64,000 bases of DNA from Oikopleura dioica (GCA_907165135.1 OU015568.1:5518001-5582000), one strand, 5' to 3'. Positions 61,322 to 64,000 are shown, counted from the first letter of the stretch. Numbers and translations: made by a program. Notes: generated from the letters alone by a model not told the origin.

Positions 61322-64000
61322 TTACTCTTCTTTTGGGGTCAATGTGATGGAGTAAGCTTCAAGACAGAGATACCACGTTCCTTTCTTCATGTGAATTGTT
61401 TCGTGAATTAACTTGCTTGTGTTATTGCCATCACTGTAAACATAATCTCCGAATTCTTTCAAGCAATGAGAAATCTTTTTCTCAACGACATAGTATCGTT
61501 GGTTGATGGGAATTCTGATTTCAGCGCCGAAATGTTCGATTAATGTGTTCTGGATAACGTATTCGGATTTAATTTGGTCGATTCGGTCAACGACCATTTG
61601 GTGAAAAAAAACTTTATATATTTTGTCTGTCGGACAAAAATCATAAATAGCGCCGGTAACTGTCAGTGGACGATCAATTTTATCCATTTGATGGTGAAGA
61701 AACACTTAAGAATATATCAAAAATAAAGATCATACTTATACTGTTAAAATTTTACCAGTTTCAAAATTGAAATCAGCTTTCACATAACTTTTTTTTGTTA
61801 GAATCTCCCATCCACTGTCATTCAAATATGTTTTGAATTTGAGTCTCTTGAGAAGCGTTTCGACTGGAGTGTATTGAAATTTTTGTTCTCCTTCTTTCGG
61901 ATTTAGATTCAATCCAGTCATGCTTCGTGGATAAATGACCATCGTTATTGTAGTGAAAATTCTTTCCATCGAAAAACGGTCTTTCATAATTGCTTCAGAA
62001 ACACTTTTCAAGTCATGTTTGAGTGCCCATCTCAGAAGAGTAGTGACCGAGATCGGCACACACAGATTTGTGTCTTTTTGGTTAACGACATTTTTCGTCA
62101 GATTTTCGAAGTTGAGGTTCATTTGTTTTGTGAGATTTTCTTTCATATTTGACATTGCAGAAGATTTCCCAAGATATGGATCGTTTTGAACGTCATATGA
62201 TGATGCATGCTTTAAAGAAATAACCTTTGAAACACCTTCGATTCCCCCAGCTGGAATCTGACCCCAAGACTTGTGGAACCATCCAGCACGAAATTCCTTA
62301 ATTATTAACAAGTGTTCTTTCTTATGCTTGAATACCGTTAATTCTTTTTTAATCTGATCTCTATCAGCGTCTGTCTCTATTGGTTTGAACAAAAGATACC
62401 AGGCGGTATTCCAATCGCATAAAGTCCACACGTGCACTGGGAATTCGACGTCCATTATAAAATTGTTTGCACCGGTATCCACCAACTGAACAATAGTCGA
62501 AAATGCAGGTGTGCCCGCATCTAAAAGAAAAGTTTGTCTTACGAGTATTTATGGCTGACACTGACTATGTCGCCGAATGTCGCCGAATGTCGCCAAAAAA
62601 AAACAAAAACACCATGTTCTAGAAAACTTCGATTCCTGGTCATAAAATCGTTTTCTTATAGAAAATACTATTATGATCGTTAAAAATGTAATTTTAACAG
62701 AAATTAGCATAAAATTAGCCATATGAAACCTAAACTAAACATCCCGTCAAGAAATCTTTGTGCGCTTCGCGCCTGGATAGAAGGAAACTCAAAGAGTGAG
62801 TCTGTCAATTTTTGCGCCTCCGTCATTTTCTAGAACGATTTTATTTTGATACCGAGACGTTTTTTTTTTATTTTGAGGCTATTTTCAACAAAATGGCGAC
62901 ATTCAGCGACATTCGGCGACATAGTCAGTGCGTCCCGTATTTATCGTTCTTACGTATATATCTGAGTTGTTCATATCTACTCCCTCTCGGTGAATAACCC
63001 ATTTCTTCATAGCTCTTTTTTCGTCTAATTCTTTGAATGACTCCGAAATCGCTCCACTTTGGAACGTCGCCAACAAGAAGAACGTTCGCCGGTTTGGCGT
63101 CTAATTGTTTGATCCCAACGCGATCTAAATATTTGAATCCTGCTTCGATTTCAGGGAGCATATTTTTCCTCTTTTCTATGCTCAAAGGTTTAGCATCAGT
63201 CAGTCGGTCTTTCAAGTTGCCATCGCATTTCTCCATGATCGTTATGCATCCCAAACAGTCAACTTTCATTTTATCATTTTGTAGGAAAATTTCAATATTG
63301 GAGTAGTGTTTCACTACATTTCTGTGAAATGGGATCGCATTTTTGCTTTTATAGGATTCAGCGATTTCGTAATCTGAATGTCAATTTGATACCAATTTGA
63401 GCTTCTTAATTTGATTGACAAAATTACCTTTAGAAAGATTGATTTTAAAATGCAGCTCCTCATCCTTCAGGGCCTTCGTAAACAGCGCTGGATCAAAACA
63501 TTGAACTCTAACGGCAACTTTAAGGTCTCCAAAACTTTCATCGAAAACTATTGCTTCTCCTCCCGCTGAAATGATTTCTTCTTTACGCAAATCAAGGTTC
63601 CAGTTTCCATTTTCAGCTTTTAAATTTGATCGTTGAATTTTGATTTTTGCCTTGGAAAATCCCCACATATTCTTTTTTGTATATTCTGCATTTTCCGAAA
63701 GAATTTTTTTTTGCAGCTCCGTAGCCGGCCAACTTCTGTAACCGGTTGTAATTTTGGTGGGAAAACCTCTGATTTTATCATAGTGATAGATTTTAAATTC
63801 TATTTTGCCTTTTCCATTCTCAAAAATCACCTCTGACCATCCAGGTATTTTTCTTAATTCATCATTTTCACCTTCGAGCTCCATTCTCTCGACGGACAAG
63901 ATCAGTCTATCCAAATCATTCCTTGTCGTTTCTCTCTTCAAATTCTTTTTAAAACCCTCAAGCCATTCCTCAATCGCTTCTTTTGTCAATTCTTTTGGAT
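61322..64000 (-). CDS. Atypical protein kinase-like domain fused to a C-terminal papain-like cysteine protease domain (5' end outside the window)
   Basis: ISAGGEAIVF..KVAVR, HRNVVKHY, IMEKCDGNL, QLDAKPANVLL, WSDFG, HAGTPAF; then QKDTNLCVPIS, FFHQMVVD, EYVIQNT; three GT-AG introns in phase. Confidence 0.8.
62559..62930. mobile_element. MITE with CACTG...CAGTG ends in the kinase gene intron (CACTA/CMC-like ends, tentative)
   Basis: cactgactatgtcgccgaatgtcgcc / ggcgacattcagcgacattcggcgacatagtcagtg. Confidence 0.75.

Follow-up and report, generated by a model that had tools for sequence, protein, structure and literature searches.

Does the end of a 64,000-nucleotide stretch of Oikopleura dioica DNA (GCA_907165135.1 OU015568.1:5518001-5582000), called the window below, encode a single protein in which a kinase-like domain is joined to a papain-like cysteine protease? 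A preliminary description of the sequence had proposed such a fusion at 61322-63989, and we followed it up by computational analysis. The best explanation, to which we assign a probability of roughly 0.72, is that the gene belongs to a family whose products are cytosolic chains of about 700 amino acids in three parts, likely combining an active cysteine (iso)peptidase with a kinase-type switch module. Both domains have known folds, and the novelty lies in their union in one cytosolic chain. A full-text search of the literature found nothing on the family and no characterised fusion of a kinase with a papain-fold domain. Nor do we know of any characterised protein that unites these two domains in a single cytosolic chain.

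One gene encodes the kinase-like and the papain-like domain

Direct reading of the sequence showed a four-exon gene on the minus strand, extending from 61322 to past 64000, with GT-AG introns in phase 1. About 707 codons are distributed over the four exons without stops, and all splice sites are intact. The features are as follows.

63428..64000, continuing beyond the window end, minus strand: exon 1, N-terminal domain of about 135 amino acids and the kinase N-lobe strands (translation and paralog alignment)
63374..63427, minus strand: intron 1, 54 nt, GT..AG, phase 1 (read from the sequence)
62954..63373, minus strand: exon 2, kinase core from helix C to the activation segment (Pfam Pkinase)
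62521..62953, minus strand: intron 2, 433 nt, GT..AG, phase 1 (read from the sequence)
61756..62520, minus strand: exon 3, kinase C-lobe, linker and the helical half of the papain-fold domain (254-codon open frame)
61705..61755, minus strand: intron 3, 51 nt, GT..AG, phase 1 (read from the sequence)
61325..61704, minus strand, with the stop codon at 61324-61322: exon 4, beta-sheet half of the papain-fold domain (translation)

The fusion is real, because the kinase C-lobe and the Gln/Cys motif of the protease lie in one uninterrupted frame within exon 3 (62520-61756). In the paralog L024 (G000:C10), intron 3 is absent, and the kinase C-lobe and the whole protease lie in one exon with a continuous frame of 357 amino acids. 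In addition, at least 10 annotated Norwegian O. dioica proteins (CBY, 690-720 amino acids) have the full architecture, namely the N-terminal domain, the kinase, and the protease part with Cys, His, Asn and a C-terminal W-Y.

The translation of each exon was compared separately with the homologs. On P0176 (707 amino acids), the four translations tile in order and without overlap, covering residues 37-199, 213-335, 343-562 and 582-705. The junction across intron 1 reads NLSK-D-YEIAE and is collinear with annotated homologs. Because the exon translations are collinear with full-length annotated homologs, the four-exon splice model is supported.

The fusion proposed in the preliminary description was thus borne out by a single exon spanning the junction, which no cDNA could divide, and by the agreement of independent Norwegian gene models. 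Its span, 61322-63989, does code for kinase and protease, but in four exons and not as one open reading frame (ORF). Its remark that no signal peptide was evident also holds: neither a signal peptide nor a hydrophobic N-terminus was seen in the window copy or in the Okinawa paralogs.

Intron 2 contains an element resembling a miniature inverted-repeat transposable element (62559-62930, 372 bp), with 37-nt terminal inverted repeats that are 97% complementary. The insertion explains why this intron is 433 nt long, against 51 and 54 nt in the others.

The catalytic residues of the protease are conserved

The catalytic residues of papain are Gln19, Cys25, His159 and Asn175. In the window copy, the Gln codon (62080-62078) and the Cys codon (62062-62060) are located in N-Q-K-D-T-N-L-C-V-P of exon 3, with Gln six residues ahead of Cys. 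Exon 4 supplies the His codon (61603-61601) in F-F-H-Q-M-V-V-D and the Asn codon (61549-61547) in Y-V-I-Q-N-T. The positions first proposed for Cys, His and Asn, and the Q-x5-C spacing, proved exact when read on the minus strand.

A family profile was searched against 1.84 billion representative sequences, and it matched 286 proteins at E <= 1e-3 and 158 at E <= 1e-10, many of them single-exon ORF fragments. Column counts over 156 database representatives gave Gln in 59/61, Cys in 57/60, His in 59/61 and Asn in 73/85 (with Asp in 3 more). Other motifs were near-invariant as well: the Pro of Y-P-R-S (66/66), G-W (65/67 and 64/66) and W-Y (58/62 and 61/62). Because these columns are conserved across the 156 representatives, the Cys, His and Asn motifs are not chance matches. 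Two divergent relatives, P0100 and P0122, show the textbook H-A-V ... K-N-S pattern.

Some paralogs depart from the rule. L017 and L019 (G000:C4, at about 3.23 and 3.285 Mb) are nearly identical and carry Ser where the catalytic Cys would be, in the motif R-E-R-F-L-S-V-P, with His and Asn kept; they may be pseudoprotease members of the family. In L036, the His was lost.

The C-terminal domain is predicted to have a papain-like fold

Since the catalytic Cys and His of the window copy are in different exons, the structure of the C-terminal domain, about 270 residues long, was modelled on L024, whose 357-residue frame is 38-39% identical to the window exons. With an alignment of 50 paralog pieces, AlphaFold2 produced a model with a mean predicted local distance difference test score (pLDDT) of 70.6, a predicted template modelling score of 0.72 and a core pLDDT of 81-92. 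In this model, Cys133 opens the helix 133-148, His254 lies in the strand 250-262, and Asn272 follows the strand 267-270. Judged by this predicted secondary structure, the catalytic residues of L024 are placed as in papain.

An exhaustive comparison of the L024 model with the PDB by VIA-align returned papain-like cysteine peptidases in all of the top 50 matches (Z 9.1-5.0; rows within 1 Z count as ties, and by the tool's own statement Z 7-8 is common background). The top match was Der p 1/Der f 1 (Z 9.1, 148 residues, 3.3 A), followed by calotropain (8.9), by cathepsin B, falcipain-3 and xylellain (8.5), and by the C39 domain of PCAT1 (8.0), while staphopain, IdeS, ATG4, UfSP and ZUFSP appeared in lower rows. 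The weight of this result comes from the fact that all 50 rows share one fold and cover residues 117-350.

Other searches pointed the same way. The Foldseek list against the PDB was dominated by C10, C47, C66, C70, C39 and C1 entries, none of them at E <= 1e-3. A shape search of the ESM Atlas led to the C39_2, C39, C70 and C10 families, and the neighbours by language-model features were C39-like and Mac-1 (score 0.93). Foldseek against viral models (BFVD) gave no meaningful match. The two properties by which the preliminary description had proposed to judge the protease assignment, a papain-like fold and conservation of the triad among paralogs, were therefore both found, the former as a prediction for L024 and the latter family-wide, with Gln included.

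The kinase-like domain has Arg at the beta3-Lys position

On its own, exon 2 scores above the cut-off of the Pfam Pkinase model PF00069 (E 2.2e-9; 37.5 bits against 31.7), and full-length homologs score 35-49 bits. Kinase matches in the PDB were weak and generic (MAP2K-like, Chk1 and DAPK, E 3e-4 to 1e-2). Exon 3 opens with the kinase C-lobe, about 85 residues long, which has G-T-P-x-F and D-W-x-T-A-W. In the divergent homolog P0127, the corresponding residues are matched by positions 93-258 of Pfam Pkinase and also by positions 1-85 of the family profile.

Kinase motifs were counted in alignments of 26-30 paralogs. The glycine-loop position, which is carried in exon 1, is an invariant G-G-E-A. 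The beta3-Lys position is Arg in all 26 paralogs counted; the window copy reads V-A-V-R-V, with the codon at 63509-63507. Asp, Lys and Asn of the catalytic loop are kept in 30/30 paralogs (D-A-K-P-A-N in the window, Asp at 63101-63099), as are Asp and Gly of DFG in 29/29 (D-F-G in the window, Asp at 63050-63048). The activation segment of the paralogs has a conserved M-G-Y-x-R-R-G-S-K-Y/F, which contains an R-R-x-S site like those of basophilic kinases; the window copy reads S-P-R-G-S-R-Y there (62990-63000 region). By sequence definition, the kinase part is an atypical kinase or pseudokinase in which the phosphotransfer residues are preserved.

The N-terminal domain, formed by the first 135 or so residues in exon 1, is strongly conserved; nowhere in the gene is the DNA better kept between copies than over the codons of its first 40 residues (about 83% identity). 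AlphaFold2 modelled it confidently (pLDDT 82). Comparison of the model with PDB folds gave a best Z of only 4.6, hence no fold was assigned. It is a conserved domain of the alpha/beta type, of no recognisable fold.

The family has about 100 copies in O. dioica

The genome to which the window belongs is the Okinawa assembly of O. dioica, OKI2018_I69 (64.28 Mb, 19 contigs). In six-frame searches, exon 3 had 152 matches, and exon 4 had 103, of which 95 were free of stops. The family therefore has about 100 copies in this genome, a count that the preliminary description had called for. Matches are concentrated in two regions of C1 (5.49-5.97 and 15.4-16.6 Mb) and one of C2 (11.6-12.7 Mb), with others dispersed over C4 and C5.

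A word-based protein search with region 400-635 of a paralog ORF found no match, probably owing to the limits of word matching and the choice of query, since 46 relatives were recovered when P0004 served as the query. All named database relatives are from O. dioica and have no annotation beyond "protein kinase domain-containing" or "uncharacterized"/unnamed. More distant relatives were found on metagenome contigs without an assigned organism (contigs of ENA ERZ508537 and JGI 3300027207). The family seems to be confined to Oikopleura and some marine metagenome contigs. In a chordate genome that is very compact, it accounts for about one in every 170-200 genes, and its distribution marks it as a lineage-specific invention.

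One of the metagenomic relatives has a different arrangement. P0100 (686 amino acids; ENA ERZ508537 NODE_12221, 1395-3455) has, in one open frame, two papain-fold domains with a partial kinase between them, and shows a canonical H-A-V...K-N-S. The GC content of its contig is 36%, and a kinase ORF lies just upstream.

Evidence against an active kinase-protease fusion, and alternatives

Several results weigh against our reading of the gene as a functional member of a family of active peptidases with a kinase-type switch. Pfam contains no family, of peptidases or otherwise, that matches the C-terminal domain of the window copy, the paralogs or the database homologs. The hidden Markov model PF00112 (C1), searched over the whole genome, found about 8 cathepsin loci and no locus of the family, and PF03412 and PF13529 (C39 and C39_2) had no match genome-wide, while both matched control genomes. 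A sequence-profile search of the PDB gave only chance coiled-coil matches. When the family profile was aligned with O. dioica cathepsins by hhalign, the probability was 0.15%, which is not significant; the single aligned stretch was the Gln...Cys helix. The domain has diverged beyond the reach of every curated peptidase family, and the protease part is therefore best treated as a new papain-fold family. As for the structural evidence, the model was made on L024 and not on the window protein, and its best Z is only modestly above the background stated for the tool. In the kinase part, Arg for the beta3 Lys is a classic kinase-dead change.

The remaining adverse points concern the window copy itself. 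The paralog start M-K-I-S-T-H-P-K-E-L, as in L024, has its matching ATG just past window position 64000, out of frame: 11 extra bases relative to L024, beside an A-run, separate it from the frame of exon 1, and no other in-frame ATG was found in the window copy after the upstream stop. The window copy may have lost its start codon. Among the 109 columns with conservation of 90% or more, it also departs from the family at 8 (7%), including a change of the His of HxD to Gln and of an activation-segment Arg to Pro. Three bulk RNA runs and one single-cell run yielded 0-1 reads on the gene, a count that is uninformative since the runs were chosen by species label, may derive from another, strongly diverged population, and were not shown to contain the population of the gene.

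It is a serious possibility, though we judge it below even odds, that the window copy is a young pseudogene or silent copy of a family that is itself functional. The displaced start codon without an in-frame substitute, the substitutions at conserved columns and the want of usable RNA reads would all fit this. However, the roughly 707 codons of the four exons remain free of stops, the splice sites are intact and none of the four protease residues has been lost. The rate of deviation is high, yet it falls within the range of other divergent paralogs. The main alternative to a true loss of the start is an assembly error, as the assembly is Nanopore-based and an A-run adjoins the frameshift.

The interpretation of the C-terminal domain as an active cysteine (iso)peptidase leaves its reaction to be considered. 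The domain could be a papain-fold enzyme other than a general endopeptidase, that is, an isopeptidase for ubiquitin-like proteins, a processor of double-glycine leaders, an amidase or an acyl-transferase; we regard this as possible, if somewhat unlikely. C39 leader peptidases, ATG4, UfSP and ZUFSP lie within about 1-3 Z of the top match, the ESM Atlas neighbours are mostly C39-like, and the predicted cytosolic protein has neither a signal peptide nor a pro-domain of the cathepsin type. Nothing in the comparison separates these options, however: C1 reached Z 9.1 and C39 8.0, in a ranking in which rows within 1 Z are tied.

That both modules are dead scaffolds, a pseudokinase and a pseudoprotease acting by binding, appears improbable to us. 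The Arg at the beta3 position in every paralog counted speaks for it, as does the loss of Cys (to Ser, in L017 and L019) or His (in L036) in a few paralogs. On the other hand, the family diverges fast, and yet the columns of Gln, Cys, His and Asn rank among those it keeps best; in the kinase part, the Asp, Lys and Asn of the catalytic loop do not vary, nor does the Asp of DFG. Unless there is catalysis, or at the least nucleotide binding, such constancy would be difficult to account for, and we disfavour the scaffold explanation for this reason.

That the fusion is a gene-model artefact made from neighbouring kinase and protease genes has a negligible probability and is refuted by the exon structure, for although every frame of the region contains stops, the splicing was done by eye and the exons were searched one by one, the junction lies within one uninterrupted exon, L024 has the C-lobe and the entire protease in a single exon, and the full architecture recurs in at least 10 independent annotated proteins.

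Proposed function

Most likely, the C-terminal domain is active as a cysteine (iso)peptidase, given that its four catalytic positions are kept at 86-97% across paralogs whose overall identity is 25-60%. The kinase module would most likely serve as a nucleotide-binding or low-activity switch. The R-R-G-S-K in its activation segment could be phosphorylated, and the module may control or target the protease in cis.

The coupling of kinase and protease and a role in defence or genetic conflict are a conjecture that we hold as doubtful; the role is suggested by a family that is large, clustered and fast-diverging. The conventional immune genes of this chordate are much reduced in number. A more specific and still less probable version is a single-chain "switch plus executioner", in which the Arg-type kinase would respond to a signal (a nucleotide, phosphorylation or a foreign protein) by releasing the cysteine protease, with the approximately 100 copies forming an immune or conflict repertoire. 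Such a repertoire would belong to innate immunity or to genetic conflict, possibly of the toxin-antidote kind.

Comparison with known systems

The family would add a new member to the families of papain-fold peptidases and another case of a kinase with a conserved Arg for Lys. On the kinase side, the closest parallel is with pseudokinases of the KSR type. In mammalian KSR1/2, Arg replaces the beta3 Lys, the fold is kept and ATP is bound. The family resembles them in having Arg at this position with the catalytic loop and DFG retained, and differs in its protease domain, which KSR-type proteins do not have; no specific sequence similarity to them was found.

On the protease side, the papain family (C1A: Der p 1, cathepsin B and falcipain) has the same two-lobed fold as the L024 model, with which it aligns at Z 9.1-8.5 over 142-157 residues at 3.3-4.1 A. 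As in C1A, Gln stands six residues before Cys, Cys lies at the start of a helix, the His strand continues into a hydrophobic run, and Asn comes directly after the next strand. Unlike C1A, the family has no detectable sequence relationship to those enzymes, and no signal peptide, pro-region or disulfide pattern; it is predicted to be cytosolic, is fused behind a kinase and has invariant motifs of its own (Y-P-R-S, S-G-W and W-Y-L-L-P).

The second parallel is with C39/C39_2, the leader or double-glycine peptidases of PCAT/ABC (ATP-binding cassette) exporters, in which a compact cytosolic papain-fold domain is likewise joined to another module. The C39 matches of the L024 model had Z 8.0-7.0, and most of the ESM Atlas neighbours by shape or features carry C39 families. 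C39 domains are bacterial and use Cys-His-Asp, whereas the domain of the present family is about 100 residues larger and keeps Asn.
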